Origin: Macrostomum lignano
Lineage: Eukaryota
Direction of reading: 5' to 3'
Length of the DNA stretch: 64,000 nt
NCBI GenBank assembly: GCA_002269645.1
Contig: NIVC01000111.1
Coordinates: 186,001-250,000 of the forward strand
Shown: one piece after another, positions 31,922-63,865 of the stretch
Layout: every line of letters starts with the position of its first letter
Numbering within the stretch: the first letter of the stretch is position 1
Program-made: the position numbers and the translations under genes
The notes under the pieces: generated by a model
Seen by the model: only the letters and a program-made list of their open reading frames with translations
Told to the model about the DNA's origin: nothing
Database searches by the model: none

Positions 31922-31964
31922 GTGAGGCCGATTTTTTAATTCGATATTTTTTTTACGTTTATAT

Positions 31965-32228
31965 TCGACATCTATCCTAAAATCCATCCCAAAATATCCC
32001 ATATATATCCTAAACTCTATTCCATATCTATCGTGAGATCTATCCCATATCTATCGTGAGATCTATCCCATATCTATCCTGGGATCTGTGACATATCTAT
32101 CCTGAAATCTATCCCATATCTATCCTGGGATCTGTGCCATATGTATCCTGAGATCCATTCCATATCTATCTGAGATCTATCCCATATCTATCGTGAGATC
32201 TATCCCATATCTCTCCTGAGATCTATCC
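31965..32228. repeat. 23 bp repeat (ATCTATCCCATATCTATCGTGAG), CLPTM1L intron 7
   Basis: Tandem copies are visible. Confidence 0.88.
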
Positions 32229-32252
32229 GCCATCCACCCCATCCCCCATCAG

Positions 32253-32355
32253 GCTGTACCCCGTGGACAAAAGTCGCACAAACGAATTCGGCCAGAGCTT
32301 TGACGAGGCCGAGCCATCGAGCGGCGATGCCGGGGACAAAGTCAAGTCTGAGTAG
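32253..32355 (+). CDS. CLPTM1L: CLPTM1L exon 8 (joined CDS 1617 nt = 538 aa + stop)
   Basis: CCATCAG|(W)LYPVDKSRTNEFGQSFDE...KVKSE*. All eight exon phases close the frame. Confidence 0.93.
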
Positions 32356-37340: not shown

Positions 37341-37888
37341 CTTTGTTATTTTTTTGTTATGTCTCGTTAATTTTCTGTTCTGGTTTATTCTTGCCGCATA
37401 AATATTGTTTTATGCTGTCAAGGACTGTCACACTTTGTCTAAAGCACTTCTATCACGTGCTTTATTCACGACTTGGCTCTGTCATTGTTTATCAGTCTTT
37501 TTTGGCCTCCACTAACCTCACTGTTCCCCCTGGGTTGCGTTGGAGCATTGCAATTTTTCTCAATCAGCCTCCAAAACAAGTGGAACAATGGGAGAGTCAG
37601 CAGGGTCCACCCTAATTCAATTTTTGTCATCGTTAACTAGCCTTAGCTTTGCATAAATCCATTAGTGATTGCTTGTGGAGCAAAATGAGTAAACACACAG
37701 CAACTCTGTTCGGGAACTCCTTTTTTGTGCATGCCAATTTTGCTCCTAGAAGAGGAGCCAACAACGGTATGATGTCGTTTGCTTTTTTATTTTTTGTAAC
37801 CATTTATGGGGCCAGTCCTCAGTCTGTTGGCCTTGGTTGACTTCAGTTGACCTCATTTGACCTCAATTGACCTGGATCTGACCCCGAG

Positions 37889-38626
37889 TCACGTGACCCT
37901 CCTCGGGGCTCCTCGGCGGCTGCACCGGCTTCTCCTCGACCTCGGCTGGAGCGGCGGCAGCGGCGGACGGCGCCATCCGGGTGGAGACGGTCTTGCCCGA
38001 CAGCCCGGCCAGCGGCGGTCGCTGCAGCAGCCGCCGAAGCCTCCGCTGCGCTTGGCCCCCTCCGCCCCCGCCTGCGCCGGGTCCGTCGCCGAGTTCAGCT
38101 GCTCGTCCTCATCAAACAGCCGCCACACCAGCGACGGCAGGATCAGCCCGACGGCGGTGACGACCGCGCCAACGCTGAAGACGCCGAGAGCGACGTACTT
38201 CAGCACATTGGCGCTCCGGTTCCACTCCTGGTTGGTGCGGCTGCGCACGAAGCCCTGGACTCCGGGCAGCTCAACGAGCTCCGGCTCGTGCGGCAGGAAG
38301 AAGGCGATGGCGAGGCCGAGGGCGCCGAAGATCAGGCAGTTGATGCCGATCCACAGCATCGCCTTCCACACGATCGGCCGCAGGTGGCAGCCCCGCCGCT
38401 GCTTGCCGCCGCCTCCGCCGCCGCTCGCCAGCAGGCGTCGCATCTCGTCGCTGGCATCGACGGTGGCCGCATCGGCTGGAGGCGCCGCGCCCTCGTCAAG
38501 GCCGCCGCTTCCGCCAGCGCCGCCGCCGCCGCAGTAGAACTTGTGCAGGTAGGATTTCACCTTGGGCCTCGGCGGCGGCTGGGGCTTGGAGGCCTCGGCC
38601 GCAGCCTGCGGTGTGACGTCCGACAT
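37889..38626 (-). CDS. NRSN1: Neurensin family vesicle membrane protein (C-terminus uncertain, possible frameshift)
   Basis: ATG at 38626 (MSDVTPQ...). KVKSYLHKFY matches neurensin GVRSYLHQFY. IVWKAMLWIGINCLIFGALGLAIAFFLP is TM1 and LKYVALGVFSVGAVVTAVGLILPS is TM2. The NRSN1 versus NRSN2 orthologue is not resolvable. Confidence 0.82.
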   Translation of the reverse strand: MSDVTPQAAAEASKPQPPPRPKVKSYLHKFYCGGGGAGGSGGLDEGAAPPADAATVDASDEMRRLLASGGGGGGKQRRGCHLRPIVWKAMLWIGINCLIFGALGLAIAFFLPHEPELVELPGVQGFVRSRTNQEWNRSANVLKYVALGVFSVGAVVTAVGLILPSLVWRLFDEDEQLNSATDPAQAGAEGAKRSGGFGGCCSDRRWPGCRARPSPPGWRRPPLPPLQPRSRRSRCSRRGAPRRVT

Positions 38627-42285: not shown

Positions 42286-42830
42286 TCACAGCGGACGACA
42301 GGTCAGGCGTCCGCGGGTGCCGCAGCCGCTGGCCGAGCAACGGCACTCCTGGAAGCCCCCGGACAGTCCGCTGGCCGACTCGGCCGCCACCTCGGCCGCC
42401 AGACGGTCGGCGAAGACCCGGCCGAACAGCTCGGCCCGGCCGCCCGCGTACTGCCGCCGTCGCAGGAAGCGCAGGTCGAACACGGAGCCGCCCGACTCGG
42501 CAGCGAGCCGGCCGCACTTGCCGGCGGGCCGGCGGGTGAAGCCGTGCAGCTCGGCGCTGCCCTCCGGCGACTCCAGCGAGAAGGCCTTGCCGGAGTCGAC
42601 GCCGAACGCCTGCGATCTGCGGCCGAAGAAGTAGGTCGGCATGGCCTCCTCAGTCAGCAGGTGCAGCCGGACGCCGGACTCGAGCAGCGACTGCCGGACC
42701 GACTGCAGAGTGCGGCGGCCCTCGTGGCACTCATCGCACGCCACCAGGATCACGTGACGCGACGCCTCTGGCCGAAGCTCGCCGAGTCGAGCGGCCAGAC
42801 GCACGGCCTCGAGAGCGTCGGAGCCTCTGG
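42286..42830 (-). CDS. Giant large lipid transfer protein (apolipophorin/apoB-like), C-terminal segment after frameshift 2
   Basis: (ARGS)DALEAVRLAARLGELRPEASRHVILVACDEC...ECRC...TCRPL* continues the vWA-like post-vWD domain begun by ADIVLVLEERGC. Stop TGA at 42286-42288. Confidence 0.8.
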
Positions 42831-45800
42831 CCCATCGACGCTGGCATCGGCGGTGTTGTGCGTCTCAACGGCGTCCAGCGCGCGCAGGAGCTGCTCCTCG
42901 GATCCCATGAGCTCGCCGGCCAGGGTGTGCCAGTGCGGCCGGCTGCGCTCCGTGGCCACCGCCTTGCCGCGCAGGTGCGCCGGGTTGCCGAAGCCCAGCA
43001 GGCCGAACCGGATGTCCGACACGCCGCTCGTGCTCAGGCTGCTCTTCACCTGGGCGACCAGCCGCGGAAGCCGGCGCAGGGTCTCCCGGCCGATGCAGCC
43101 GCGCTCCTCCAGCACCAGCACGATGTCGGCCGCGACTGCGTCCGGCGCCCGCAGGCGGTGGCTCTGGCCGAGCGCCAGCTGCCGGTAGCCATCGCCGCGT
43201 GTGTTGCAGCTCAGACACTTGGCCGGGGCCCGCAGTCCGCGAAGTCCCTTGGCGTCGCAGTGGCGGATGTAGGCGACGGCGGCGCGGCACACTTGCTGTG
43301 CGCCACCTGTGCGGCGCTCCTGAGCGCAGATGTCCCGGAACGGCGCCGGGTCCACGAAGGAGTAGCAGCGACGGAATGGGGACGAGCGCGGAGACTCAAA
43401 CAGGTCCAGACAGTCTGTGTGAACTCGCTCAGGCACCTTGATGATGCTGGCTAGGTTAGCGTGCCGGCACGCGCCCAGTCTCCACGAGCCGGTGAAGTCC
43501 AGAACCGCGTCGGAGCGTCGGCCCCTGCTGCTGATCAGGTCGTTGAACGGCTCGTTGTCGAAGTTGCCGAACAGGCCGCCCAGCCGACCGTGGTACCAGC
43601 CGGACACGCTGACCGTGTGCGTGTCGGCCTCGGGGTCCACGGTGATGGTGAACAGATGGCCGAGGTCCTTCGCCCGCAGTCCCGAGCCAGTCCGGACGAT
43701 GCTCAAGTCGCCAATGTTGAGCGGCAGCTCCTGCTGAGCTCCATCGACCAGCACGTGCAGGCGCGGCGTCACCCGGATGCGCTTGCCGTAGGCGAAGATG
43801 TCGAGGCTCTTGCCGGACCGGCCGTAGGTCAGGCCGACCGCCCAGCCCCTGCCGCGGAAGTCCCTGGCGAGCAGGTAGCCGCACTCGCCGCTGCCTCGGA
43901 AGTCGAAGTGCCGTCCATCGAAGGTCACGAAGTGGTCGCCGATCACGGAGGCGACGCCCTTGAACTTGGGGATCCACGAGCCGGAGGGCATGTCGAAGTC
44001 CGGGATGGAGTCGTACACCACATCGCGCACGGCCGTCAGCTTTCGTCGCACGGTGTTGAAGGAGTTCCGGGCCGACTTGTAGCTGTTTTCCAGCCGTCCC
44101 TGCACTTCTTCCAGGCCGGATGAGGGCGGCGTCTTCAGATCTTTCCACTTCATAGGCGAATAAAAGTGCGCTTCGAACTTTCCTTGCTTGAAGTTGTTCT
44201 CAATGATGGCATTCTTGGACAGGCCCAAATAGTCAGTTGCCAAGCCGATGGTGTTCTGTCTCAGGTACTCCACACCCTGGAGATAGTTGTCTCTGGCGAA
44301 GTCTTTCAAATTCTGCTCGATGTTGAAGTGGTCCAGGAACCATCTAGACTGCGTGTAGGCGCCAGAAGCCATGGAACTGAGCAGTCCGTCGCCTACCATG
44401 CGATTCACGTGGTGCCTGACCCGTGCCTTCGCGGAGGTGATCATCACGGCTGCGCTGTCCGAAGCTCGGCCAATGCTGGCCTCGATGGACCGGTGGGCTG
44501 TCAGCACCTGCTCGCGGATGTCGGAGTGCAGCAAGTTGAATGCCTCGTAGTTGACCTCGCTGACCGAGCGCGCCACGCGCATACGGAGGTCGCCAAGGGT
44601 CGCCGCGCTGCCGCTAAGCGGGTTGACCGCGGCAAATCGCTGGTAGCCGCTGTGCGCCGCGTCCAGAGCGGGTCGAATGCCGTCCACGGCGCTGTTGATG
44701 AAGCGCAGCGCGTGCCCGTTCACCTTGCGGTAGAGACGGTCCCGGTGGTGTTGATAGACGGCGTAGACTCGAGTGGCGTGTCCATAGCAACGGCTGGCGT
44801 GGCTGGCGATGCGGTTGGCTGCACTGACGACATGCGGGTGGACGTAGGCTGAGTAGGCGTCCATCGCGCTCTGTGCGGCTCCCACAATTCTGGATACCAC
44901 GGCGCGAGTGACTTCTCTGACGGCTTCGTAAATGTCGCGGCTGTAGAATTCGTTTCGGATGTACATGTCTCGGAACTGAGCGTTCATGTAGCCGAGGTCC
45001 CGACGCAGGGGTTCCAGCTCCTGAGCTACACTGTTAGCGGCGCTCGATAGGTCGGGCAGGATGAGATCGTTGCGAACCTGCGCCAGGATTTCGTACACAC
45101 AGGAGGCCTTCATAGACGCCATCAGGGCTCGGCCGTCGTTGAGCAGCGCTGGCAGGCTTTCGCGCAGAGCGGCATAGCGGAGCAGACTGCTTGTGGGATT
45201 CCAGTGCAGCTTCACTTTCATGAGGTTCCGGGACTTTAGCTGGACCTGAGCCAGCAGTTGCTGCATCTTCACCTGGTTAGTCACTCGGTGCACGTCCGCC
45301 CTTAGGTGCCAGTCGTCGGCGTATCCGAGGGCAGCGGAAAATCGGTCATTCTCCCTGGGCTCGTAGATTAGTTGAAGATCTGGCTGACTGGAGACGCGGA
45401 CTTCCAGTTTCTGTCCGTGAGTCTTCGCGGTGTAAGTTGTTGCTCCCAGTTTCACTGTCTTCTTTAGCTCGAGGCTGCATCGTTTAGTTGGCAGGACCAG
45501 GTCAACGCGAAGCGCGCTGGAGCTGAGCTCAACCACAGATTGCATCACGGTGGGCCGGCCCCCAGCATCGGTGTAGTGGATGGACAAGTTGCCGCTCCGC
45601 ACCTCCGATGTCGTCGTCATCTCGCCATTGATCCTAAAGTCGACGTTGCTGCTTGCCTGGGACAGGCTGGCTGAGAGTTGGGTGCTCTCTGGAGCTTTTT
45701 GAACGGCCGACCACTTGAGTACAATTGTGTCCTGAATTTTCTTCGTAATGTCCAACCTGATGTCAGTGGAGTGCAACGTTTTTCCCACTCCCCTTTCGGT

Positions 45801-48800
45801 GCTGATTGAGACTGAGTACGGCTTCGGGTCAATAAACCTCAGCTCGGCGGTGCCAGCCAATTGTCTTCCAGGCGTGTAGCGACCCTGGACTGAGACTCCC
45901 AGAATTTTGTTTGACTCGGCGTCGTTCGCATCCCAGTTGACGGTAGCTGAAGCGCGGAACTCTCCAGTCTTCTTCTGGTAGCCAATGGTCGACTCGATTC
46001 GCCTGGCCGGTGTGCTAAGCGCCAGTTTCGACTCCACATCCACCTCAGAATAGACTCCTTTGTTTTCTAGAGAGGCCTCGAATGAGAGCGGCCGGACAAC
46101 TCCCTGATTTGGCGTGAACGACAGCTTGTAGCCAAGCCGGCCCGAGAAGAGGCTGATCTCTCTGTCCAGCTGCACTGTTCTGTGCGGGGTGCGCAGGGAG
46201 AGGAACGATCTGCTTTTAACTCCTTCGCCGCTGGCTTGCACCTGGCCTCGCAGGTGGAACGGGACCCATTCACCGATGTTCACTTTGATCTCGGAGTTGA
46301 TCATTTCACCAGTCATGGTCACCTTATAGCCAATTACCACCGGTTGTGTGCGATTGACGACGATCTGTCCACTTTGAATGCCGGCTCTGATCTTGATGTC
46401 GTGCCACTGCTCTCCATTGACCCTCATGCTCGACGTGTGCTCCAGGATGCGCTGTCGCATCTGGTTTTTCACTCTAATCTCAGCATTTCTGAAGCCGCGG
46501 AATGAGCTCTCAACTGACACTCGAGTGGACATGGCAGCCGGTCCATTGTAACTGCCAACGGTGGACACTCTGCCGAAGTGGCCGTGCGGCATGTGCACTA
46601 GCGCCTGCACTCGCGGCTCCGACTCCGACTGGTCTGTCAGAACTTTGAAGCCAACCTTCTCGTAGCCTTCAATTGGCAGAGCAATGCGAAGTCTGACAGC
46701 CTCGTTGGTTGCGTTGCCATCAATTGTGAGCTCCTTCTCGTTGATCCGGGCAGCAAATTCGGCGCTCCAGAGCTCGTCCGATCTCCGGTGCTCAATCAGG
46801 AATTTGGCGCTTTTGATGGCGCGATGCGGTGTCTGAATCTTGCAGCTGAACAAGCCTTGAGGATAGCGCGCCACCTTCTTAACATCGGCATTTACTGATG
46901 CGGCATAGCGATAGTCATTGAGTTCAAAGCTGGCCTCAGCACTCAGTTTCATCGGTGGCTCGCTATTGAAAGCCACCTTGCCTCCCAGTTTCCTCACCAG
47001 TTCAAACGGTGTCTGAACTCGAAGCTCAAGCACCCTTGAGTCAATCGTTAGGCTGCATTTTATGACTTTGTCAGCAACGCGGAACTCAGCATCCCAGGTG
47101 TTTTCCTCCGCGTCCATTCTCGGCTGCAGCTTGATCGTGAAAGCTGGCACCACGGGGCAGCTTGAGGTCACGGACACGCTTAGCGGACCATTGACCTGCA
47201 CCTCGACAAAGGAGCCCGACAGCCAGTTCACGCTGAGCACGGACTTGCGATTCAAATTTGCAGGCAGGAGTCGCAGCAGTTGCCGGCTTGCCGGGATCAA
47301 CTCGCTGGAGAATCTGTAGGCGAATGGCAGGCCGTTTCCGTAGCGCACCTGGATGGACTGTTCAATCTTGTTTGCGGCGTCGATGACATGCGAGAAGAAG
47401 AAACTGGCGGGCTCGTTAAGCAACGGGATCAGGTTGATGTTGTGCACAGCGGCGTTAAATGTCGCGTTCCTGAGGGAGAGAATCTGAGACTCCAGCGTCA
47501 CGCGCACGCTGGCCGAATCAGTCCCGATCGACCCCACGTACTTGAAACTGGACAGCTTCCTGCCGAAGATCTTGTTCCGAAGTTCCACTTTACCAAATGT
47601 TGTCTCCATGCTGAAGTTCACCTGGATTGGGTCTCTGTCCGGTAGCTGGAAATCGGCGTTCACAGCACCCAGCTTTGTGCCATCCGCGGACGCATTGGCT
47701 GTAAGCCGGTAGCACATGGGGCAGGTCCGTCTCAGGGTCGCCTCGGCCACGTAGGGGCTGGAACTCCACCACGGGTTGTAAATCTTGAATAGAGCGCTCT
47801 TGTCAGCACTTTCAAGGCTGTACTTGAAGCGAAGAACATCTCTGCTGCCCAAGCTAGCTCGAGACTCGAACTGGTTCGGCTTCCAGGTTAATAGGATTTG
47901 CTTTTCTGGCTCCGTATCGATCCGCCTGACCTGGGCCATGAGCGACTCGCCAGCGTATCGGTGACCCGTCGAGACCAAGTGCCGACCCAGAAGCTGCACC
48001 CGATGGTTCCACCTGTGCCGATGAAGGCCATCAAACTCGTGATCAAAGTTGATTTTCTGGTCCAAAGCGTTGAAATGAGCGACAAGGCGCTTTCTGAACT
48101 CCGTGGACGGCTCGATTTTCAGGCCTCCAACTGCGGACTGAGCCGTGCCCAGCAGCACCAGCGTGTGGTTAAAGTCAAAGTTCGTCCACGATGCGTGTCG
48201 ATGAGCAAACCGGCCCATCAAGTTCTGAGCCGAAATTTCCGCCAAAAATTGCTCCCCATCGAGGTTCCAGGACACTTCAACTGGCAGAGGGCCATCATTA
48301 TTCACTGCAACGCTAGCTGTCAGTTTTGCCACGCGCATACTGGAAGGCGCAGTCAGAGAGCCGCTGATGGCGAAGGCTTCCGGCACCCAGGTGTATGACG
48401 GACAGTCCACGCAGGTCATTCTGTGATTGAAGTCGAAGCTACGCGCATCGCGCTGGTTGTGCCTCAGGTTCAGCTTGAAACTGCGCACGTCCAAGTTGAG
48501 AGACTTTTCAGCTCCATCCAGATTCCAGCTTCCGGCGTACACCAGACCGCTGCTGTTCAGCTTGATCTCGCCCGACTTCCAAGTAGCCGCTGCTTCCAGA
48601 ACACCCGCCAGGCTTTGCTTTTGACCTGTCGGGAAGGACAACTCGGTGCTGAAGCGGCCGCTGGTGGCGGAGTGCTGCGCGAAGTTGAGCCGCAGATTGG
48701 GGTGCTGAATTTCGAAGGATGACTTGCCCGGCGAATTAAAATTCCAGCTGAGCCGCTTCTCCTCTTGCAGGCCGCTGGAGCCATGGGAGTACAGCAGCTT

Positions 48801-51800
48801 AACGAAACCTGCTCTCCGGAAACGGTGCGACCACATCCAGCTGGCTGTCTGACCAAAAGACTGCTCAAAAACCAGCGTTGTCTCAGTCAGCCGAGCTGCT
48901 GAGCTGCCATCGTACACGCCGCTCGCTTGTAGCTTGATGGTGGCGAAGCTGGCCTTGTGTCTGAAGTGGGCGACTCCATCGTCGGCCTTGTTGGAACTCA
49001 AGTCAATTTCCAAGACAGGCATTGAGGTAAACAGACTGGCGTAAAAACGCTTCGAGTTGTCCGAGAAATGCCAGTTGGTGCTTGCTTTAAAGTTTGCGTT
49101 TCTGCCCTTCAGCTCCGCAGTAAACTTGCTCTGTCTCCAGTTCTCAAAATCGTGCTCAAACTTCATCTGGGAATCGACGCCCCATCGCGGGCTGGACAAT
49201 TTGATGCTGCTCAGCTTATTTGCACAGTGCATCTCGACTCTGCACAGCGAAACGCCGTTAAACTTGCTCTCAGCGATGAGGACTCCAGCCTGCCAGTTCA
49301 GCTTGCCTTCATAGAGCGCCTCAGAGCCTCGATGAATGTAGTTCTCCGTCTCCAGAAGACCAGGCGCCATCACTGATTTGTGCAGCAGCTTCCAGTCTCC
49401 AGCATGGAGTTTAGCGGCGCAGCTATGCTCCAGCCAGCTGTTGTGATGATGCTGGAAGCTGGCAGACAACAAAGTTCGGATCGATGTAGAAGTCAATTCG
49501 GCAGTTCCCACCACTTCCACCCGATATTCGCTACGAGTGGATGGCTTTACTGCAAACTTTGCCTTGAATTCGTGCTTCACGGGGCCATTGGTGAACGAGT
49601 GATGGCAAGAAAAGTCTGCGTTGGACCTGTGCTCATGCCTGAGCTGCATTCTCGCGCCTCCGATGTTCAGGTCAGCGCGAAGGCTCGGCAGCTTCAGGCT
49701 CCAGCTTGCGGTGAGCTTCGGGGTCTCGAAGCTTCCAGTTTGCTCCATTGTGACGCTTCCTTCTCTCCCGCGAAGGTCGTGGCCAAACTTGGCGTTGGTG
49801 TGAAAGCTGGTCCAATCGCTGTTGAACTGCAGTTCCGAAGAAGTCTTGTCGCATTTTGCGGATAGCTTCAGGACGTTGACGCCTTCGGCTGTGTGCTGCA
49901 CGAGAAATGAGCGCCTGTCGAATTTGAGAACGTTTTCATGGCCCAGTCCTGTCAGTCGGAACTTTGCAACTTGGTTTTTGGCATCGATTTTACCGGTGTG
50001 AGTCACTTTCCATTCTCCAAGGCTGGCCTGGTTGGACCAAGCTGTGTCTCTCCATCCGGCATTGTTGCAGTGATGCTGCAGGCTGACTCTGATTGGCGGC
50101 AAGTACCGCCTGTACCGGTGCTCACCAGTCGACAGTTGCACCGAAGCGCTGCTCATCGACTCGTATCCCTTTTCCGGAGACGCCACGTTCTCCTGCAAGT
50201 TTCCATCTAGCTGGAGGTACGTGACGCCATTGTACTCGATGGTGTTGCTGAAGCTTCCCGTCCTGGTAGCATAGGATGCGTGAGAAGTCAATTTCAGGCT
50301 CTTCGTTGGGCTGGTGCAGTGCAGCTTGGCATTCCATCTAGGGCCAGTCAGGATTGCTGAGCTATCGAGAGTGTACTTTTTTCTTCCAAACTCCAGTTCA
50401 TGCAGGATTTTGTGGTGGTAGGCTCTGTGGATGTGATTCAGTCTCACGTTGATTGGCAACCACGGGTTCGCGGTTTTGAACTCGGCACTGTAGGTTCCAT
50501 CCGACGGTAGCAGATTCATGTGGGCCAGAGCCTCGAGAGCTCCGAATGTGATGGCGATCTTGGGTCTCAGGAGAGAATCGCAGTTAATCTCCAATTTGAG
50601 TGGACTGAGTTGGTCCCACTCGAAATTAACATCAAACGTCCTGCCCTTTCTTTCGAATTTGATGGTTTTCAAGGCCTTGCCCGCCACCTCCAGCTTAGCG
50701 CTGACCGAATACTGATTGTCCCAGTTCACTACTTCTTGCTTGGACTCAAATCCGAGAACCACTTGTCCATTGTACAGCACATTTAACCTATGTGTGCTGG
50801 TTCTGGTTCTGTAGTAGCCAGAATGATCGACACTCCACATAATGCTGGCTACTTCTGTACGGCCGCTCTTCACTGTCAGATCCCACTGCTTGTCTCGAAG
50901 AGCTGAAGCAACTTCTCCGTTTACTCCGAATCCGCTGAACTCCACCTTTGCGTACCGGTTGTTCTCATAGCTGACTGACAGCTTCGACGACAACAGCTGA
51001 TTTTCTGAGGCCATGCCCGTGGCTACATTCAGATCCGCCTCCAAAACTCCTGGCTTCAGCTTGGCGGTCCATTTCGATGCGCAGGATCCCATGACAGGGC
51101 TAAACAGGCTAAGGCGTCCCTCCAGCGAGTGCTCGGTTGCCGACGACAGCCATCCTTGACGAGACTTGACGAGCAGGTGACCGTCGACGGATCGGGCGAA
51201 AGCCTCTGCGCTCACCGCGAGCTGGACGTTGAACGCCTTCTCTTTCTTAGCGCTGAGCATTAACTTCAGTTCTCCACTGCGAAGTCCTGAGAGCCTGAAG
51301 CTGATTTCGCCAATCAAATTGGTTTGGACAAAGTGGGTCTGTAGTGCCAAGCTATCTTTGCTTATAAACGATGTCAAACCGTTGATTCCGTTCAAGTGCA
51401 CCTGAATACTGTCCTTCAAGTTCGTAATGCAAGTCAGTTTAACTTTCCTTTCGAGATGTGAGACATCGATGACTACTCGCTTCTCCTTGTTGCCGTAGCC
51501 AGTGATTTGCACCGATGCGGAGACTTCGTCCAGCCGAATTGCGTACTCAGGCAGATTCAAGGATGTCCGAACTTGGAACTTGCCATCGTGCAGCATTGAC
51601 ATCTCATAGTTGAAATTCGATTCCTTGTACGCAACTTTCAGTAGCAGTGAGAGATCATGCAGTCCACTTGCGGAGGACACCATTCGCCTGTAGTCCCACT
51701 CAATCGCTGACTGTTCAAGGGCTGTTCCGAACAGAGTGTTCACTCTGACAAAACCGGAGTGAGGCAGTCTAATGCCCGACCATCTCTCAGCCGAAAACAT

Positions 51801-54800
51801 GGATTGAAGCTTTGTTGAAACATCAACTAGCTTTTGTTTATTCATTTCGAGAACAATTTGCAACACTTTGTTCACATCGTGTCCCGAGCGCGACATTTTC
51901 ATTTCGACCAGCCTGCCAGGGTAGTGGACTCGCAGCTTCATCCCCTTCTCGTTCGATTCTCTGCTCAGTTTCAGCTCGTTCGCATAGTCGTTGAAAGCGA
52001 CACGAAGCTTCACGCTTCGCTTGGCATCCATGTTGCCGTAGACTGCAGCGTAGAGTTCGGCAAGTCTGAGATCCTCAACCGGTGTCTCCAGCTTCACCCT
52101 GAATTGCTTGTCGACCGACAAGTCCCAGTTGGTCAGAACAGAGAAGCGCTTTGTGCCGTACTGGGTAGTGAGCTCAAACTTGTAGTTCTTCAGGCTGCCG
52201 GCTGTCTGGAAAGCGAGCTCCACATCCGGCAGACCCGGCAGTTTCAAAGCGACTCGCGCATGCAGGCCATCAGTGAGATCCAGAACTGCCTGAGCCTTGA
52301 GCTCCTGGTTTGGTAGCATGAGCTTCGCAGTAACGTCAAATGGCATGGATACTTGAGCAACCAGCTTCATTCCAAGCTTCTCATAGCCTGGAAATGGTGT
52401 TGTGACTTTGAAGAGGACTGTTCTGTCGTTCTTCCAGTTGTAGACTGCTTTAGCTGAGTACTTGTCGCGCTGGTTCAACACGGCAACAACCCGCTCGTCA
52501 AGGCTTCCTTCCGAGAGATCCGACTTTGACTGCCACTTGAAGCTCAACTCTCGGTTGACGCCTAGGTTCACCTGCATCTTCTTGTTGAATGCATCCAGCA
52601 CACTGTCGGCCTTGAACACAAACTTTCCTGTGCTCAGACTCATCAATCCGAACTCACAGATGACGTGCTCGTGCTTCTGCACATGGTCAAACGATGCTTC
52701 AAACTTTGGAACAAATTCAATGCTGCTGTCTACTCTGAACTTCGCTGAAATTGGTGCCACGAGAAGTCCCTTTGGCGCGTGCCACATGCCTTTGACTTTC
52801 ACGTTTCCAAAGAATGGCGACTGAATGAGGACGGACGCATCAATCAGCGGGTTCTTCTTGAAAGTGACAGCCAGTTCAGTTGTTTCAATGGATTTCAACG
52901 GGGCAACAAGCTTCACAACCAGCCGCTTTACTGTCTCATTGGCTAAATCCAGATCGCACATTGCGCCCCAGGCTTGCGAGAAGATGTCGCTCACTTTGGC
53001 ATTGGCAGCCACATCTAGCAGCAGTCTTTTCGGTTTAATTTCCCACGTGGCGCTTGTGGTGGCTGTTGCAGTCCTGGACTGAACCTCCGTGCTAACCATC
53101 GCGCTGAAGTGGCCCCTCTTGAGTCCAACTCGCGTGGAAGCCTTCATGAATGGCGAGGAAACGGACGCGAAAAAGTCCACCAACATTGCGCCGTTGCTGT
53201 CTCGCTGTGGTCTCCATCCGATGATTGTCAGCTCATTGCGAATTGACAGAACAGTGATGTGGCCCGTTAGTTCGTTGTCGTTAACTCGGAATGTGAGGTC
53301 CTGCATTCCGTACAGTTTCGTATCCAGCCGAACCGTCATTTTCCGAGCACTGCCCTCAGTTTCAAAGTCGTATGTAAAAGTCGATTTGTCCCACGAATCG
53401 AATGGAGTTTTGACTGTGACTCGTGCGAACACCTTGTTGTTGAATACCTGCACCTCTTCTGATAGAGAATAAGCACCAAGCCTGCTGCTTTGAACCTGGT
53501 GACGTCCTTCTGCACTGAAAGAGTTATCCAATTTGCTCGAAAACCTCGACCGCAAACTAAGTCGTTCATTCAGCTTCTCGAGGTAGACGGACGCGTCAAA
53601 GATGGACTGAACCTCGGTGTCCCCGACTTTTTCTTCGGCTTTGTTGATCTTTAGGAAGTTCTCACCGACGATAGGAGTCCTCACAGTCAACTCGAGATTT
53701 GTAGCCTTGTTAATGTTCCTCCACTTGAAGCTGAAAGCGGATGTGCCGATGATGTTCCAAGGAGCTTGAATGACTAGTCTTCCCGAGGCTGCTCCCGGTC
53801 GCATCTCGGCGCGGCTATCAAAGACCATCGTTCCCACGATCTGGTTACTAAACGAAGCCTTGACCTGGTAGCGCACGAAATCGAATTCGAATTTAGTTTT
53901 GTCGATGCTATCAATGTCGCTGATAATCTCGAAGGCCACAGAGATCTGACTCGGTGGAGCGCTAATTTTGCTCTTCAGTTCGTGCGTGCCAAGATACTCT
54001 TGGTCAAGTCTCAGAAGCAGTGAACCCTCAGGTGCTGGAAGATTGCCGTTGACTGTCAAAGTGCTTGTTCTCGCTCCTTCGAAAGGTGTTTTAAGTTGGA
54101 CCTTCAATTCCATAGCCCGTCCGAAAGAATACGCTCGATCAACAGTCAGGGTGATTGAGTCAAGGCTTCCAGATTTCAGTTCGATTACTTCGCTCATAGC
54201 CCAGTCGAGCTTGTTTCTCTTAATCTGGCTGAACTGAATCGAGTGTTTTCCCAAATACGCACCATCAAAGCTAGCTTTGATGCTGCCAGTTTCCGCTCCG
54301 GTGTAAAACTCGAGGGTGATTTTGTTCTCTCTGGTGTAGTCGTTATTCAGCTTGAGCTCAGCGACTCCGGACCGCCACAAATCCAAGGTTAATGAACCAG
54401 AAAGGGATGTGTAGTGCAAGCCCTGCAGGCTCGTTCGCAAAGTCAAAGATGCCAGTCCACTGTTGTCCACGTTGCTCGCCTTTGCCTCGACACTGAGCAG
54501 AGTCTCGTAGTTCTTTACTAGCGTGATTCCAGCAAAGAACGGCTTGTCGCCTCTGTTGAGCCGGTAGTTGAGGTCAATCAGATGCACAGGGACCTCCGGG
54601 TTTCGAGCCTGGGTGTACTTCGCGGAGAATCCTGCCGCATAATTGAAAATGTGCTTGCCGGTAAACTCTACCACGTGATTGTTTACTGTCACGGAAATCG
54701 CCCTCTCGAAATACCATCTTGTATTGCCATGACCTTCCAATTTCGCTGCCAACTTAAATCCGTTCGCATCGATTCGAATGCTCAGCTTACCGCCTGAGCT

Positions 54801-55558
54801 CAACTGTTCCTTCTCAATTTGCAGCATTTGGATATTGTTAACTAGCACGGTGACAGTATTCTTGCTCGGGGCTCGCTTTAGTTGCATCTTGGCCTCTCCG
54901 AGTCTGGGAAGAGTCGCTCCGAATTCGCCGTCAGCATCACTGTACCGACCTTTGTAAACAATCGGCGTGTGGTACTTTGAACTGAGCTCCAAATGCTGGC
55001 TAAAGTCCCACAGCGGACCGTGGTGGCCCAAACTCAAAAACATTCGGTCCGTGATAGGTGTCTCCATGCTAAACTTGGTCTTCAGCAGGGCCCTATTCAA
55101 ATCAAATCCGAACTGTCCCTCATAGTCAAATACGCTGGTCATATCCAGCTTCACGTTCAGTCTGTTGTTGAACCGTCTCCAGTGACCCTGATGGCGCAGA
55201 TGGAACTCAACTTGACTCGTTGAAGCACCCGTCAGCTTTGCGTCGGCCAGAACTTCGAAATCGTTCAGGCTGTTAAAGTTTGTCTGCTGGCTCAGCTCCA
55301 TTTTCAAATCTCCAATAGTGACTGCAGCTTCAGTTCTTGTGCCTTCCTGGCTGATGCTGGCGGACATCATGGTTGGCACAGTGATTGTGAAGATTCTCTT
55401 GCCAGTCACTTTACCGTATGTAAGCTTCACAAGTTGCGACATTGGTCGGCTGTCGCTCAGTGCCATCTGCAGCTCAACATTAAAAGCCGTTGTCGGCTGC
55501 ACTTTGTATTCACCCTCCAGCTTGAATTTGGCCGAATCTTCGTATCCAAGCAGCTTCA
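42831..55558 (-). CDS. Giant large lipid transfer protein, central beta-rich segment, amphipathic helical region, vWD domain and Cys-rich C8-like region
   Basis: 4303-aa open frame with no stops. vWD motifs are HFVTFDGRHFDF and SVSGWYHGRLGGLFGNFDNEPFNDL...FTGSWRL. The C8-like part is CLDLF...CYSFVDPAPFRDIC...CRAAVAYIRHC. Confidence 0.9.
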
Positions 55559-58500
55559 GGGCAGCTTGGCCTCCACAGACACAGTTGCGGGCAGATAAGA
55601 ATGAGTAAGTTTGGTTCTGACCTCCAGATCGTGATTGCCGAAGATCGCATTCCATCGGCACATCAGCTTTACTTCAAAATTGCTCGGGCCATTTCTTGCG
55701 AACAGTTCGCCCAAGACTGGATGGAACCCGGGTCCGTCCACCTGAACTGTAATCTTATTTTCGGAAATGCTAAAGTGCAACCTCGCTTTCTTTGTCCAGC
55801 CAGGAAGCATCAGCTCAGATGTCAGCTGGTTGTCATCTTCTAGGTTGTGCACATGGTTGATGCTGATTTCTCTAAAGTTCGGCAGAGACGTCAGCAGGCG
55901 GAAGTTCAACTGAGCCCGAGTGGGCGATGAAGCAGTGCCACTGATTCGCAGTTCCCATTTGTCGCTCAGAATCCTTGGCATCTCAAGCATGACTAGCAGC
56001 TCGTTGCCCTCTGCACTCAACTTGCTCTCAATGCCGCCAACGTACGGCAGTTCGATGCTGATAGTTCCCGCAATGTTAGTCAAGAAGTTCCACGTAACGC
56101 CGTAACAGATCCGGTTCATAGTCGGAATGCGAAGATCAAACTCGGCAACTCCCTTTTTGGCGTGCTCAAGATTCAGCAGAAACGACATGGTTGCGGGGTC
56201 AGAGTACGGCCATTGGAAGTTCGCATTTGCTGACAGGTAAGCCAGGCCTGTCGACCGCTTCTCAGCTTCGAATTTGAGTGTTACAGGGCCGCGCAGCCAG
56301 TTGCATTTGTGCTTTGCATCGAGGCTCAGCTTTCCAGAATCCAGCTTGAGTTCCAGTCCGCTCTCTTGCTTGAAGTCTATCACCGTGGTGTTGACGCTAA
56401 GGACTAGGCCGTTAGCCCCAGCAGTTTCTCCATATTGCAAACTGTTCTTCAACACCTGCGTCTCGCCGTACAGAACTGAAATCTCGTGACGCAATGACCG
56501 ACTAAGTTCGAACAGTCTTGCTTCGGCAGAAATCGTTGGAATGCCACTCAATTCAAGCTTTCCTTTGAAATGAGCAGGACTTGGCTTCTCCAAGGTCAGC
56601 TGCATCGCTTTCTCGTCGCCCCAAGCGTTCAGCTTTCCTTCAATTTCAACAGCGTCGCGCCTCAGTGCTTCGGCCTTCAAGTTCGCTGCCAAGCTGGTCT
56701 CTGAATTTGCCACGGAAAAACCAGCAGCCATTGTCAAACCTCTGAATGCCAGCTCGTTTTTAATTACCTTCCGGCCACCGAGGTCGCTGAGGAAATCGAT
56801 TTTGCTCTTCGCTGTCCAGTAAAACGAGTCGGTGTAGCTCATTTGGACAGTGACATTCAGTTCCTTGAGCTGTTCGAACTCTGTTTTGGTGTAGAAGTTA
56901 CCCTCGAATCCTGGCGAATCCAGCTTCCAGTTCAAGCCGGTGGAGAATTCAGGAACAGTTGGCGACTCCAGCTTGAGCGCGGCATCATATGTCGACGAAG
57001 AAACATCGATGGTTTGATGGGCGCTGATCTTGACACTTTCCCATCCAGCGAGATTGCTTTCAAGTTTTGATGACAGCTTAAAACTTTCCCATCCTCTTTG
57101 TTTCACATTGTTCAACAATTGAATCCGGTTGCCAAAGCTCTTGACCTTGAAACCATGGCTATTGTCGACAAATCGGCTCGCTGTTCGACTTCCAGAGTGA
57201 AGCTGCAGCTCCTCCAGGGCCCAAAACGGTGTAAGAATCTTAAAAGTTCCAGAAACTTCATCGGCAGCAATCTTGAACTCACTGCTGCCGGAGATGCCGC
57301 CGCCAGGGTATTGCAGCTCGATAGTCGACAGGCCGTTTCTGCTGCTGTCAGTGTCCTCCACCAGATGGTTGAGCACAAGTTTCGTGTCCGCCTGCCAGTG
57401 CCTCGGAAGGTTCAGTTTAATGTCCAAGCTAGCCTTCTTCCAGCCTCCAAGCCTGCCTTGCAGCTCGATCATTCGGAACTCAGAATAGCAGTCGTGCTTT
57501 GCAGTCATGCCAATCCACCTTTCGCCATTTTCCTCGCCTACGGAAAAATTCATCTTGAGTCTAGAGATAACCGCGAATGGCGTTCGGGCCTCCAATTCAA
57601 ACGTTCCATCTCTCCTATCAACTATGGTGTTGATGGTCACTTTTCGATCTCGTCCAATTGTAACAATCAAAAGAGAGTTTCTTGATTCGCCTGAACTTTT
57701 GGTGGTGAAACTCAGACCTTGACTGGTGTGTGGGGATTGCGCATTAACTTCAAATTTGATCGTCTCTTCAGTGCTTTGAGTAGCCTTCGAGAATTCGAGG
57801 AACGACGTGTATGCTTCGTTATAAACTGCCGATGCTTTCAACTGCTTTTCGTTTTGCTCCCAAAGGTATTCGGAGCTGATTTTCACAGACCTCATCCATT
57901 CAGACGCCGTCTCAACGACCAGCCCATGGTCCACCCATGCATCACGATCTTGTCGTCGCAGCGACATGCCAAATACTTTCTCTCCCATGTGGTTCAGCTC
58001 CATGGCAAACTTCTTGTTTTTATATGTATTGGTCACTTCCAATACGAGTCGCTCGCGCTTAATGGCATCAAACGGTGTTTGCAGCACAATTTCTGATGTC
58101 TTCGTTGAGCCTTGAGCAAGCATTTTCGATGTCAACTTAATTAGCTCGTTTCCCCAGTAGATCTCGGTGCTTCCCTCAGTATTGCTATCGCCGTCTTGCC
58201 TCTCCGAACAAATCATTCCAAACCTTGGCAAACTGGCGTGCGGTGTTTCAACTTTAAAGTGCATTCTTCTACCAGCCTTCGAGAATTGAAAGTCCGCTTG
58301 ATAGTCGCCTACAGATGGAACTTTCAGTTGGGCGTTAGCTTCGATCCGGTTGGCCGACTTTGCAGATGTCTTCAGCTTCAAATCATCCATAAACGGGGCG
58401 CTAACAAGAAAATCGACTCCCATCTGTCGATTCAATCCGGCAGTGGTCTCATCGTAGCCATCCAAGTTGATTAGCATCGATTTTCCTGGCTTGTAGGACA

Positions 58501-61500
58501 GCTTAGAAGAGGTCTTTACAATCTGTCTGTTGTGCTTGTGGCTCCAAATAACAGCGAGGGTCTCATAGCCTGGCACCGATGTTGCGAGGCTGATATTACC
58601 GCGCGATTCAACGCCATATCTAGACGGATAGAAATCGAAGCGAGAAATGAGGTCAATATCTTTCCGGTTATTTGTGGCAATCTTAAAGCTGCTGGAAAAC
58701 TGCTCAAGGTCGTCTTTATGGGTGACATCCAGCAGCAGCTTCGGGAACCAGTTCAGAGTGCTGTTGCTCTGCAAGCTCAGCCCCACGTCTCTTCCGCTGT
58801 AGGCACCTCGGCTGTATCCGTGAACCTCAACAATGACGATTTTCTCTGTCTTGAGGTCGACATCCAACTTAGATTTAATTTCACTAGAGGTCAGCCAGTG
58901 GTTGAGCTCGAACTTCATGAAGCTGGCATGGGCCCAGGGCGTTACGATGCTTAGTCTAGAATGAAAGTTGTTGATGTTTCCAAGATTCACCAGCAGGTCA
59001 GCCTTGAAGCGTCGGCCGTTAACGATGCTCTCAATTTGCAGCTTCCTGACCCGGAGGGAACCATAGCCATCCAGTTTTAGCGTAATGTCTTCATACCTGT
59101 TAAACGGCGTCTCCACTCTAAGCATAGCAACAATACCCTTTTCCGTCCATCCATCATTGATGTCGTACACAAAGTTCGCTGAAACCTTCTTGCCCTCAGC
59201 GTACTGAAGCTCGATGTACTTGTTGCTCTTCAATGGTTCGTTTCTTTCATTCAGACGAATTGCGATTGCGCCCATTGGTACGCTGATTTCTAGGCGGCCG
59301 GTTCTCTCTAGCAAATGAGCTTGTCGTTTCGTTTCAAATTCCCCATCGATTCGGAGCCCGTCAGTCTGCTGTCGCCTGGGGTTCCAGTACAGTTCCGCCA
59401 GGAGTCTGTTTTTGCTCTCCTCGCTGCTGACCTGCAGCTTGCCTTGAACATCAACTCCGGGTGCATTGATCCGTGCGTTCATATCTGCGCTTTGGTAGTC
59501 AAACTTTCCCGTTGCATTGGCGGAGTAGGTGACGCTGGGTGTGGAAAGCCTAGCAGCAATGTAAGGTTCGCTTGAACTTGTATCGGCGCTTAACTCAGCC
59601 GACACGACGCCAGAGTATGGAAGTTTTAGGCTGCCGCTCACCTTGTGCTTTGAGTCTTTTTGCAGCAGCTCCGCCTGTACGCGGTAGTCGGTTTCAAGCA
59701 CGGATAGAGTGGACTCAAACACGATGGTTCCCTTCTCTGGGAAGTTCTCCAGCTTCGATACAACATCGCCAATTAGATCACTTTTCAACGAGGCGGTATA
59801 GAAAATATTCCCAGGCTCCCTCTTAAGCTTCAAAGTTGTGGAAACCGGTGACCTCGGTTCATTGTTGCAAATCAATCTGAAAGTCATGTCTGTCCAGGCC
59901 AGGTCGTGCACTAGAACGCTGTCGATTCCCTGTTTGTAACCTCTGTGCTCAAAAAACGAGTCAAGCTTGTGCTCATGACCTGATGATGGTGTGCCGATAT
60001 CGTACTTGCTATACAAGCGCGTGATTTCATTGTTAGCATCCTCAAATCTTAGTTCCAGTTCGTGGTTGGGGTACATTCTGCTCTTGAAGACAAGTGATAC
60101 ATAGTTGTTAAATTGCGGAACATTTGAGAAAGTGGTCTTAACGCTGCTCCTGATATTGCGGTCTTCGGACGTCATTGCAAACTTGATGGCTGGCTCAATT
60201 TTTACAGTCTGCTCCGACTCATCGCCAAACTTGTAACCAACCGTTGTCGAGCCGGACACACTTCCGCGTGCGATGTTGTAGTTCGACTCAACTCTGCCGC
60301 TAAACACAGGTGAGCTGATATTGGCCAAAGCAGACGCTAGTCCATTCTCGTAGCTCATGTGAGTGTTCACTCCAACCGGTCGTGTCAGCAAGTTCTCGAC
60401 CGTTGCACTCAGTTCCCAGCTCTTTCTTGCTGGTGCTTTACTAAAACCGTAGGTGCCCTTCAGAATGATTGGTCTGGAATTCAGCAGACGAATCTCCATT
60501 TGAGTCAGATCGACTCTAAACTGTTCTGAGGTCGCAACTAGATTGTACCGGGTCGTAGCACTTGCATAGGTCACACCGTCCATCTCAGCCAAAATCTTCA
60601 TTTCTTTTCCATCAGCTCCGCTTATGAGGCTAATTTCAGCCTTTCCCTTCTTCCATGGCGTCTCAAGGATGGCTTCAGCCTTCCTGCTGTCCGAATCGAT
60701 CTTCACTTCGGCTTGGATCTTTCTGTCGCTTTTGGAGCCTGGCATGTCAACCAGAGCCTTCCAGTGTCGATTGATGCCTTCTTTTCTGTTGATCAAATGA
60801 AGCACGTAGCTTTCATGGGTGTCCTTCTTGAGCATCGACAAATCTAGTTCAAAGCCAGCCACAAGCGGAGCCTGGGGCGCATCTTCTGCCGGCAATGATG
60901 GATATCGGATCTCGGAGCAGAACTCAATGCCAAGAACCTTCTGGAGAAATCCACCGCCTGAGCAGCTCTTCCTGTTTACAGTCAGGTCACGTCTCATGTT
61001 CTGCTCGCGCTCAACGGATCGGCGTACAATGAAGAAACTTGTTTTCGCATTGAGAATATTCTGCCGCTGTCTCGGTTGATTGATCTCTACTTTTAGTTCC
61101 TCACCGTTGGCGGCCTTGATAGACGCCTGCATTTCTGTGCTTGAGTACACATTGCTCACCATTTTTACTCCATAGTCGCCGAAAACAGTGTTGATTCCGA
61201 GCATACCGCTCACATGCACCGCTCCTGATGGTACCAGTTGGCCCTCAACCTCAAATTCAGGCGGCCACTGCATCAGTTTCTTCAGATTCACCTTGCTCTT
61301 CGCTTTGAGAATAAAGGAGGCCGTCCCATTGATTCCGAGTCGTAGAGGGAATCCAGAAATCGTTGGAATCGTGACTTGCGTGTCCAAAAAGGAAATGGAC
61401 TTGTACCAGTTGATTTCTCTCATTTGCCTGAGCGAGTTGAGCAGCTTGAGAATGTTACTACCGCTTATCTCCATGTCTTCCTTCCATAAGTCGAGGAATG

Positions 61501-62850
61501 CAACTTGATGACCAAAGATCTTGATGTCCAGATTGCCTCCGATCTTCTCCTCAATCAGCTTGAATGTTTCGTCTAGCTGGGCAAGCTGGGTGTTGGTGTC
61601 AGTCTCATTGCTCTTGTTACTTTTCGGACCCAGGTACTTCTCTAGCAGCACCTCCATTCCCTGGACTCGGCCGCCAACTTCTAGGAAGTTCAGCGACTTG
61701 CCAAAAAGGTCGAGCGTCATGTTTAGAGTCGCCGACCTCGGAAGGAAGCTCTTTTGGGACCAAATGAGATTGGATTCAACCTTCGCGCCAGCGTTCAAGT
61801 AATTGGAGAAGAATGATTTCTCAATGTTTCGACTGAACTTTAGTTTGTCCATGTCGTATTGCTTCTTCAGTTTCACATCTTCCACGATCAGGCGAATGTC
61901 CTGTTTGTGCGGATCGGAAGTTTCTAGCAAATTGGTCAAATGCGTCCACATGAACGAAGCGAATTGATTGCTGCTTTCGGCTGTCAGAAGCTCGCGGACC
62001 GTATCAAAGACTTCGATCGTTGGGCAAGCCATAAGACCCAGATAAGCGGTGATGCGCAGCTCCGAGTCAAGGTCCATGTTTCTGATAATTCTCAGCAGAG
62101 GCCTCCTATCAACGGAGCACGGAGTTCGTCGAAGGGCTTCAATAGCGGCGACGCGCACCTCCATGAGGTTGGACTCCTTGTTGGCACATCGAGCAAGATT
62201 TGGCAAAAGCTCAGTCAGGTGTCCAGCGTTTCCGATAGCCTTCAGAGCCACCAAGAGGGTTCGCCTATCGCCGGTGGAGCAATCCGATCCGATCAGCCGC
62301 TGAAGAGCAGCGCCAACGCTTTTCACGACGGTTTCTGTTTCGCAGCGAGTCCGGCTGCTGCAGTACTGGTTGACAACGGCGGTAATTCCAAGTTGAGCTT
62401 GCGTTCTTGGCTCCTCAACCTGCAGTAGAGGCAGAAGGCTCTCGAGCATCTCCTTGCTCGGGTCCTGCACAAAGGCGAGCGATGTGAGCCACGCGTCCGC
62501 TTCGGTGTTGGAGACCTGGCCGCTGGCGATCAGTCCGTTCATCATCTGCACAGCAGCCGGAGTCGTCACTGCAGGCAGGGCGTCAAAGAAGAACTGCTTT
62601 GCCATCTGATTGTTTCTTCGGCACACGCTGAAACCTTCGACGTCTCTGCGCATGGTTACCAGCTGCTCGGTTGTCAGCTCCTTCAGTCTGTAGATCAGCT
62701 CGTTAAAGAGAACTGGTGTCTTGGGGCCGATGGCTGTACCGAGGTCGCAGAGGCTGCTGAGCACAGACCTGACATTCTCAACTGGATTCTCCGATGTCTG
62801 TTTAAAGTCATGATGCTGATACTCTAGCTTGCTGCGCTGAAATACGTGGT
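55559..62850 (-). CDS. Giant large lipid transfer protein: vitellogenin-N/LLT alpha-helical module, DUF1943-like sheet and start of the beta region
   Basis: Acceptor ACATTTCAG|AC (phase 1). LLT motifs are FFDALP, LKAIGNAG, VRVAAIEALRR..C, DSELRITAYLGLM.CP, NQFASFMWTHL, KFSRNIE, SFLPRSATLNMT.DLFGKSLNFLEVGGRVQG and PTISGFPLRL. Confidence 0.93.
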
Positions 62851-63513
62851 CTGAAATGTTTTTGTTGTAATGATTTGACGGAATTATTCTTCTCAAAAAT
62901 ACGAGTACAGCGTTGTACTGAAATGCAGTACGATCGTAATCGCTAAGTGACAGTTCATGAAGTAATTTAAAATAAATTTTAACCCCAGAGAAGCATATGC
63001 AACTGAAGTTTTCCTAAGGGCAGGCAGAAATTCAAAATGCAGTCAGTGGTTCACCTACCTATAGATAGCAAGGTGACCCTCGCCCTAAACTTTGAGAGCA
63101 GAGTTACTGATAAGAAGCAACCAGATAATCGGCTGTGTGCCCCCCAAGCGGTCAGAGGACATGAAAACTCTACTTTGACCCTCTGCGCTTTCGCTTTTCG
63201 CCCTCAAACAAGCAACAACACTTCTGCTTATCGTCAAGGCAGCTCCAAATTAAGGCTCTGGGTTAGCATGGCCAAGCCCAGTAAGCAAAGATAATGAGTT
63301 GGCTGCTAAACTCCGATAAGGCACCCGTGTGGGTCGCCTCTCTAGCTGCTCAAACCGCAGAAGCCTCACTCTATCGCGGAAATGCAACTTAGAAAAAAGC
63401 AAGCCAAAATGTTTGCTTTCTTGGCAGAATTTTCCTATTCTTGCTTCAACTAATTAGCATGGGGTGCTGGGGTACTGCAACCATGGAGATATGAGAAGCC
63501 AGTGGACTCTCAC

Positions 63514-63865
63514 CGTGAGCGATTCGGACAATGCCGCCGGTGCCAACGAAGGTCATTTTCTGCTGCACTGTAGTCACAGCTCCGGCAGTTTCCGTGCTGA
63601 ATGGTCGGAACAGATGCTCCTCGGAGCACACTGAGCTCTTCAGGTGGCCGGAAGTGTCGTATTGAGCTCGGCAGGTACGGTTAGCCCTAGTCAGCGGCAT
63701 GGATTGGATTCGGGCCGAGGTCCGGTACGAGCTGCTCTGGAAACTGCTGCGCACCTTCTTCTGGTCGGGGCAGCTCATAAGGTCGGTGACCTTGGTGACG
63801 CTCGCTCCTTTCGACGAATCTTGCTGGACGTTGTAGGTCACCTTGCACCGACCGCTGATGTCCGT
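63514..63865 (-). CDS. Giant large lipid transfer protein, upstream exon (N-terminal beta-barrel; further exons lie beyond the window)
   Basis: Branch point CTGCTAAC and acceptor TAACAG|, then TDISGRCKVTY (ETDVxGxCxxxY), VTKVTDLMSC and CSEEHLFRPFS. Donor CACG|GTGAGA (phase 1) matches the 62850 acceptor. Confidence 0.92.

Follow-up and report, generated by a model that had tools for sequence, protein, structure and literature searches.

One Macrostomum lignano gene very probably encodes an apolipophorin/apoB-type large lipid transfer protein of about 7,145 amino acids

The window studied here is a stretch of 64,000 nucleotides (nt) of Macrostomum lignano DNA (GenBank assembly GCA_002269645.1, contig NIVC01000111.1, positions 186,001 to 250,000 of the forward strand, so that a record coordinate equals the window coordinate plus 186,000), and its minus strand between 63865 and 42286 very probably belongs to one intact gene for a large lipid transfer protein (LLTP), predicted to be secreted, of the apolipophorin/apoB type. 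The gene shows one or more upstream exons outside the window, an exon of 352 nt and a terminal exon of 20.6 kb, and from its sequence the full protein should have about 7,145 amino acids (aa). The encoded domains are, in order, a large lipid transfer (LLT) module, about 5,000 aa of amphipathic beta structure, an amphipathic helical segment of about 400 aa, vWD-C8 and a C-terminal domain of VWA-like fold. The protein has about 1.5 times the length of the longest described relative that was found, yet it is a longer member of a well-known family. The reconstruction corrects the public annotation, in which GenBank fragments take the place of one protein of about 7,145 aa.

Three very long open frames are found on the minus strand, at 63013-55559 (2,485 codons), 55673-42753 (4,307 codons) and 42864-42289 (192 codons), together with an open stretch of 140 codons at 63868-63449. 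A chance origin of the frames of 4,307 and 2,485 codons is excluded, since (61/64)^4300 is about e^-206. The exon at 63865-63514 is bounded by an AG acceptor (63867-63866) and a GT donor (63513-63512); the following exon begins at 62850, behind an AG at 62852-62851. When exons 63865-63514 and 62850-42286 are joined, and one C is added at the CCC run 55561-55559 and one G at the GGG run 42833-42831, the repaired coding sequence contains 20,919 nt, equal to 6,972 codons plus a TGA at 42288-42286, and zero other stops. This reproduces exactly the length given by an earlier interpretation made by a model from the letters of the window (hereafter the sequence-only reading); residue numbers below are those of the repaired protein. 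The same reading had located the N-terminus outside the window, and so it is: the full-length homologue P0069 has 173 residues ahead of the first one encoded in the window, and an upstream exon corresponding to P0069 aa 78-173, with a GT donor at its end, is located on the same contig 1.4-1.65 kb beyond window position 64000 (L006, 3-287; L005 and L006 match the window with 100% identity). The homologues P0069 and P0070 start with hydrophobic signal-like sequences.

The giant exon, 20.6 kb of uninterrupted coding sequence (42286-62850), is very long for an animal gene; its neighbours in the window are genes interrupted by introns full of repeats. Third-position GC is about 0.54-0.64 at first and climbs along this exon to 0.80 at the 3' end, where total GC reaches up to 66% (42-44 kb), and the homologous mRNA (L001, 69-21410) shows a similar, weaker rise, from 0.53 to 0.68. 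Opposite this GC-rich end, the plus strand shows several antisense open reading frames (ORFs) of 198-228 codons at 42544-44852. Pfam gives zero matches for the antisense and alternative-frame ORFs inside the gene, and those at 42544-44852 are probably by-products of high GC.

Both frame breaks stem from the PacBio/Canu assembly, each being the deletion of one base in a homopolymer. Contig NIVC01002490.1 contains a copy of the locus (L007) whose DNA is 99.78% identical to window 57671-41674 and shows CCCC and GGGG at the two break sites; because this near-identical copy from the same assembly holds exactly both missing bases, the breaks are assembly errors and not gene boundaries. P0069 matches the repaired peptides at both breaks and, exactly, the splice junction RIAHDH. 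At the protein level, the 90% cluster of the annotated 4,301-aa product includes two further M. lignano proteins, PAA57432.1 (BOX15_Mlig016013g5, 2,457 aa, contig NIVC01002490.1) and PAA90151.1 (g4, 265 aa, contig NIVC01000126.1), and the former (P0197) aligns ungapped with aa 4516-6972 at 99.96% identity, with one residue different, and is continuous across the second break. Copy L007 has in turn its own 1-bp indels in short homopolymers (57476, 57229, 57068 and 54752), at sites where the window is intact. Single-base homopolymer indels that differ from copy to copy, in an otherwise open frame of 21 kb, indicate long-read consensus error. Deletion of a base in a C or G homopolymer is a typical PacBio consensus error. 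The NIVC records are those of the Mlig_3_7 assembly, built from PacBio reads with Canu and polished with Pilon (PMC5730564). Small introns were also considered as the cause of the breaks and rejected: in the 114-nt overlap at 55.6 kb, the only GT...AG pairs are 51 or 57 nt long (multiples of 3) or far too short, and the L007 copy settled the question.

On different contigs, the assembly contains the entire locus at least three times, in copies that are nearly identical (96-99.8%); window 9922-23433 is duplicated in L004 (NIVC01000126.1, a contig 96-99.6% identical) and window 41674-57671 in L007. Such redundancy would permit decay, and the window copy might then be a young pseudogene in which both 1-bp deletions are real, with only the other copies of the locus functional. 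The deletions do stand in the deposited sequence, and seven of the 12 coding substitutions between the window and L007 are non-synonymous. However, these 12 substitutions are spread over 15.4 kb, a divergence far lower than that of the 3' flank, which shows about 13 substitutions plus indels in 0.6 kb. Both deletions are moreover of the usual PacBio kind, L007 is broken at other homopolymers that the window keeps intact, and independent decay of every copy without another stop in 6,972 codons is unlikely, so that a pseudogene is a very improbable reading of this locus and an intact gene is preferred.

In the public record the gene (locus-tag family BOX15_Mlig016013) is mis-annotated in fragments of 4,301, 2,457 and 265 aa. 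The GenBank gene table of NIVC01000111.1 lists a 'hypothetical protein' of 4,301 aa at window 42750-55655 and none at 55656-65655, leaving the N-terminal ~2,600 aa unannotated, and the last 180 codons past the second break are also omitted. Taken literally, this table implies two or three genes placed head to tail, which is scarcely credible: the 4,301-aa product begins 15 codons into the frame-shifted overlap and shows neither a signal peptide nor an LLT module, the homologues P0069, P0070 and P0199 are continuous across the break, copy L007 is unbroken there, and the 21 kb contain a single LLT module and a single vWD domain. The single gene assumed by the sequence-only reading is thus upheld and its division into separate genes excluded, as L007 reads through both breaks and RNA-seq contigs of 21.5 kb from a homologue are colinear with it from end to end.

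The apolipophorin-type domain order suggested by the sequence-only reading was confirmed with Pfam, whose profiles are matched in the order Vitellogenin_N (two segments), Vit_open_b-sht, DUF1081, VWD and C8 (Table 1), with DUF1081 (PF06448) at 20.2 bits, below its cut-off of 25. The Vitellogenin_N matches cover profile positions 278-589 and 137-262, above the curated cut-off, and the first ~136 positions fall outside the window. All 67 matches of a word-index database search are apolipophorin- or apoB-like, and in the PDB search apoB-100 ranks above lipovitellin. The best database relatives are M. lignano paralogues with 55-60% identity, followed by apolipophorin-type proteins of molluscs, crustaceans and insects (3,300-4,230 aa, 24-38% identity). 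The C-terminal ~330 aa are conserved in 27 homologues, from insects to flatworms, and no Pfam model covers them; the AlphaFold2 (AF2) model of this domain has a predicted local distance difference test (pLDDT) of 83 and a predicted template modelling score of 0.84, and Foldseek matches it to integrin beta-I, TFIIH p44 and the VWA domain of BatB (E~1e-8 to 1e-7). The DxSxS metal site is absent from this VWA-like domain. The furin motif R-x-[KR]-R has three matches only (aa 4363, 4794 and 6560), none of them conserved in P0069 or P0070 or near the expected N-terminal position.

The giant form is a conserved trait. When the middle 1,200 aa were searched exhaustively with phmmer, two long relatives emerged: P0069, of 7,113 aa and 49% identical across the whole query, and P0070, of 6,972 aa and 25% identical. 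Two Logan contigs, 21,523 nt and 21,459 nt long, encode P0069; they come from two RNA-seq runs (SRR30276812 and SRR30276815) and are transcript-like, with the coding sequence at 69-21410 and short untranslated regions. P0070 is encoded by a contig of 21,080 nt (SRR14039982). Aligned globally, P0069 and the repaired protein are colinear throughout, with 51% identity and 0-4% gaps per 400-aa bin. M. lignano itself has several divergent paralogues (41-60% identity). A second paralogue group of this species, BOX15_Mlig027085, includes PAA48541.1 and, as its longest model, P0199 (PAA80758.1 / A0A267G3Y0, 5,153 aa, on a 500-kb contig), which is colinear with aa 1-4973 at 41.6% identity, expanded beta region included, and stops where about 2,000 aa remain; this model is probably a truncated annotation too, and its gene may encode another protein of about 7,000 aa. 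Large size is thus seen in two paralogue groups of M. lignano and in no fewer than two further proteins deduced from transcripts (P0069 and P0070), and since homologues of equal length exist, it is a lineage trait and not a one-off. In the planarian Schmidtea mediterranea the apob-2 and apob-1 transcripts have 17,568 and 11,557 nt (PMC9249923, supplement), and the long apob-2 transcript suggests that the trait may extend more widely among flatworms. The sequence-only reading had set the protein far above apoB-100 and insect apolipophorins in length. An exceptional length stands for the literature, where the search found no paper that discusses the size of flatworm LLTPs, but not for the databases, where homologues of 7,113, 6,972 and at least 5,153 aa and the 17.6-kb apob-2 transcript are present. 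The word-index search missed P0069 among its 67 matches, and with a 2,400-aa middle query it returned nothing, a false negative given that exhaustive phmmer found P0069 and P0070; absences in that search are therefore not evidence.

The extra length is located in the amphipathic beta region, as the sequence-only reading had supposed. In every bin between aa ~400 and 6000 the hydrophobic moment is larger for beta than for alpha structure, with the relation reversed at aa 6000-6400, and homologues of 4.0-4.2k aa align only to the flanks (aa 1 to ~1725 and ~5400 to 6970), with 500-1,000 residues between them versus ~3,670-4,120 here. By these alignments, about 3,100 aa of the beta region are additional relative to mollusc and crustacean homologues of ~4,000 aa. 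P0069 (49% identity) and the paralogue P0199 both conserve this part (aa ~1725-5394) in colinear order. A hairpin motif, 'x-phi-x-phi-x-TPF', recurs about 35 times in the beta region; the hidden Markov model of the motif was seeded on the protein's own 'TPF' sites, which makes it circular for this protein, and it was used solely to see the motif in homologues too. A recent internal duplication was rejected as the source of the extra length, as self-BLAST is empty at E<1e-3, and an all-against-all hhalign comparison of 150-aa tiles shows marginal signals only, at aa 4350-5100 (best probability 79%, E=1.6e-5, 1,035 comparisons). With no recent internal repeats, any expansion is therefore ancient. 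A His/Trp-rich stretch at window 47900-49900 on the minus strand (aa ~4350-5100) contains degenerate repeats of ~95-100 aa with motifs such as HRHASWTNFDFNH, and the corresponding modules form an obvious tandem array in P0070 (aa ~4900-5600) and in the fragments P0071 and P0072.

Table 1. Positions of the gene parts, encoded domains and frame breaks in the 64,000-nt window; residue numbers refer to the repaired protein.
Feature	Position	Strand	Evidence
Internal coding exon, 352 nt, not the first exon	63514..63865	-	Part of the N-terminal beta-barrel of the Vitellogenin_N module; Pfam E=2.3e-13
Intron, 663 nt, GT...AG	62851..63513	-	With the intron excised, the reading frame and the match to P0069 are recovered
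Single giant terminal coding exon, 20,565 nt (20,567 repaired), ending in TGA 42288-42286	42286..62850	-	Colinear with P0069; copy L007 99.78% identical over 57671-41674
Helical part of Vitellogenin_N / lipoprotein N-terminal module	61937..62845	-	PF01347 E=4.3e-47; PDB sequence matches apoB-100 (E=1.5e-26) and lipovitellin (1.7e-16)
Open beta-sheet domain (Vit_open_b-sht / DUF1943)	61049..61840	-	PF09172 E=2.2e-61, profile 1-303 of 303
Amphipathic beta region, aa ~800-6000, presumed lipid-facing beta-belt	45204..60805	-	Beta moment above alpha moment in every 400-aa bin
Part of the beta region lacking a BLAST counterpart in 4.0-4.2k-aa homologues, aa ~1725-5394	47022..58030	-	BLAST against P0007, P0013 and others
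Amphipathic alpha-helical segment before vWD, aa ~6000-6400	44004..45206	-	Alpha moment 1.11 versus beta 0.80, in this bin only
von Willebrand D domain, then C8 (D-assembly)	43215..43949	-	Pfam VWD E=5.7e-17, C8 E=7e-6; PDB matches FCGBP (5e-50), VWF and mucins
Conserved C-terminal domain, predicted VWA-like (integrin beta-I-like) fold, Cys-rich tail	42289..43136	-	27 homologues; AF2; Foldseek
Frame break 1, 1-bp assembly deletion: CCC run, should be CCCC	55559..55561	-	Copy NIVC01002490.1 reads GCTGCCCCTGAAG, window GCTGCCCTGAAG; repaired peptide KLPLK, as in P0069
Frame break 2, 1-bp assembly deletion: GGG run, should be GGGG	42831..42833	-	Copy NIVC01002490.1 reads GATGGGGCCAGA; repaired peptide DGARGSDALEAV, as in P0069

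By homology with apoB, apolipophorin and planarian ApoB, the N-terminal module would nucleate a lipid droplet co-translationally in the endoplasmic reticulum, the amphipathic beta sheet would wrap the neutral-lipid core as a belt, and the particle would be secreted, probably from intestinal cells, and would carry neutral lipid through the parenchyma of an animal without circulation. The protein may thus act as a gut-made lipoprotein scaffold; lipid binding, dependence on MTP and secretion in particle form are predicted from its family. In planarians, apob-1 and apob-2 are intestinal, their products are secreted, and they are required for neutral-lipid export (PMC9249923), and the promoter and expression of an M. 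lignano APOB paralogue (Mlig005144.g2) are gut-specific (PMC5730564). The gene of the window was compared with that published gut APOB gene and identity was rejected, as the in situ hybridisation and promoter primers fail to match the window or L001-L006 even when 3 mismatches are allowed.

Another main role for the same gene, that of a yolk or storage lipoprotein or of a clotting or immune protein, is unlikely, with several observations on its side. LLTPs of the ApoB/apolipophorin type are the major yolk precursor in decapods (PMC1783640), a vWD-C8 assembly together with a VWA-like domain is typical of multimerising extracellular proteins, the divergence of the M. lignano paralogues (41-60% identity) leaves room for subfunctionalisation, and the paralogue with proven gut expression is a different gene. 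The sequence does not distinguish these roles. Among flatworm homologues whose function has been studied, the nearest are lipoproteins of intestinal transport (PMC9249923), and that of a gut transport lipoprotein is the more probable role.

According to the proposal made with the 2024 structure of apoB100, an unbroken amphipathic beta-belt determines how low-density lipoprotein (LDL) is shaped and how large its circumference is; the belt comprises 1,774 residues in 120 strands and runs 61 nm around the LDL particle (PMC11839476). If 50-90% of the ~5,000 beta residues of the M. lignano protein formed such a belt, it could measure about 86-155 nm, which might fit a particle of ~27-50 nm wrapped once, or a double wrap. 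On this basis it may be proposed that flatworms evolved, and kept in several paralogues and species, an apoB-type beta-belt two to three times as long as that of human apoB-100, with which one polypeptide encloses a particle of ~30-50 nm or wraps it twice; this proposal is tentative and rather doubtful. If it were true, a longer belt could adapt lipid distribution to diffusion through solid parenchyma in the absence of a circulatory system, and nature would have supplied a test of whether the circumference of a particle follows from the length of its belt, as has been proposed. A homologue with ~3,000 more beta residues is a ready-made test of belt scaling, in a species that is tractable by transgenesis and RNA interference, and it bears on how lipid moves in acoelomate animals.

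Several observations count against this account of the gene and its product. The window holds the 3' 98% of the gene, and the first ~77 codons, signal peptide included, lie upstream of both the window and L006; the M. lignano gene itself is known here from genomic DNA, the long-transcript support being that of homologue contigs. Gut expression of this gene is an analogy only, because the published gut APOB primers are unmatched at the locus. For the beta region, the AF2 model of aa 3001-4200, made from three sequences, shows 48% strand in a meander of 63 strands with a mean of 9 residues, with a pLDDT of 37, too poor for claims about the fold; the top three Foldseek PDB matches of this model are apoB100 entries (E=3e-6 to 2e-4), with template modelling scores of 0.1-0.17 that make them only suggestive, and a sequence profile of the middle region finds no match in PDB, apoB-100 included. 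The scaling from belt length to particle size is an extrapolation, and the share of belt versus insert in the beta region is an assumption.

The remainder of the window contains genes on both strands. On the plus strand are found a gene for a WD40 protein (5992-7381), a homologue of the SID-1 double-stranded RNA channel (13816-17668, 941 aa annotated), a single-exon gene for thioredoxin domain-containing protein 9 (TXNDC9, 20553-21236, 227 aa) and CLPTM1 (~24700-32355, 537 aa), and on the minus strand a neurensin-like protein (37892-38626, 245 aa). The non-coding parts of 3079-41614 are packed with minisatellite arrays, with units mostly of 4-46 nt and a total length of up to 1.7 kb per array (for example 9108-10726, 23955-25664 and 35717-37342), and these arrays yield many long spurious ORFs and extreme local GC skew. 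No Rfam family or tRNA was found in the window.

Among known systems, the apolipophorin-type proteins of molluscs, crustaceans and insects are the best matches outside flatworms (24-38% identity) and share with the window protein the Vitellogenin_N module, the open beta-sheet, (DUF1081, here below its cut-off), the amphipathic beta region, vWD(-C8) and the VWA-like C-terminus, but the window protein is 1.7-2.1 times longer, with ~3,100 extra residues in the middle of the beta region. In apolipophorins a furin site splits apoLp-II from apoLp-I, whereas the window protein shows no conserved R-x-K/R-R, and cleavage at another motif is possible. Human apoB-100 (4,563 aa; 9e9r, 9bd1) shows a homologous N-terminal LLT module followed by a long amphipathic beta region, as in the window protein, which is about 1.55 times longer; apoB-100 lacks the vWD, C8 and VWA-like C-terminal domains, all three of which are present in the window protein, and the C-terminal part of apoB-100 is half helical inserts, whereas beta character dominates in the window protein to aa ~6000. 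Further hallmarks of vertebrate apoB-100 are an LDL-receptor binding site and the helical inserts 4 and 9. In architecture the window protein is therefore a relative of apoB and not an apoB orthologue. The longest described member that can be cited, the dLp/HDL-BGBP precursor of decapods (crab; 4,831 aa), is also a large circulating LLTP of the apoB type, but it is cut at two furin sites into three proteins and is ~2,300 aa shorter than the window protein (PMC8416765). Planarian ApoB-1 and ApoB-2 and the M. lignano 'APOB' (Mlig005144.g2) belong to the apoB-like LLTPs of flatworms and contain Vitellogenin, DUF1943 and vWD domains (PMC9249923); the planarian proteins are compared here by their description and transcript length, and the M. 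lignano 'APOB' is a different paralogue from the window gene. The paralogue BOX15_Mlig027085, from the same species and assembly, is a different gene whose annotated model lacks the C-terminal ~2,000 aa, and it shares the extra region of the beta domain with the window protein.

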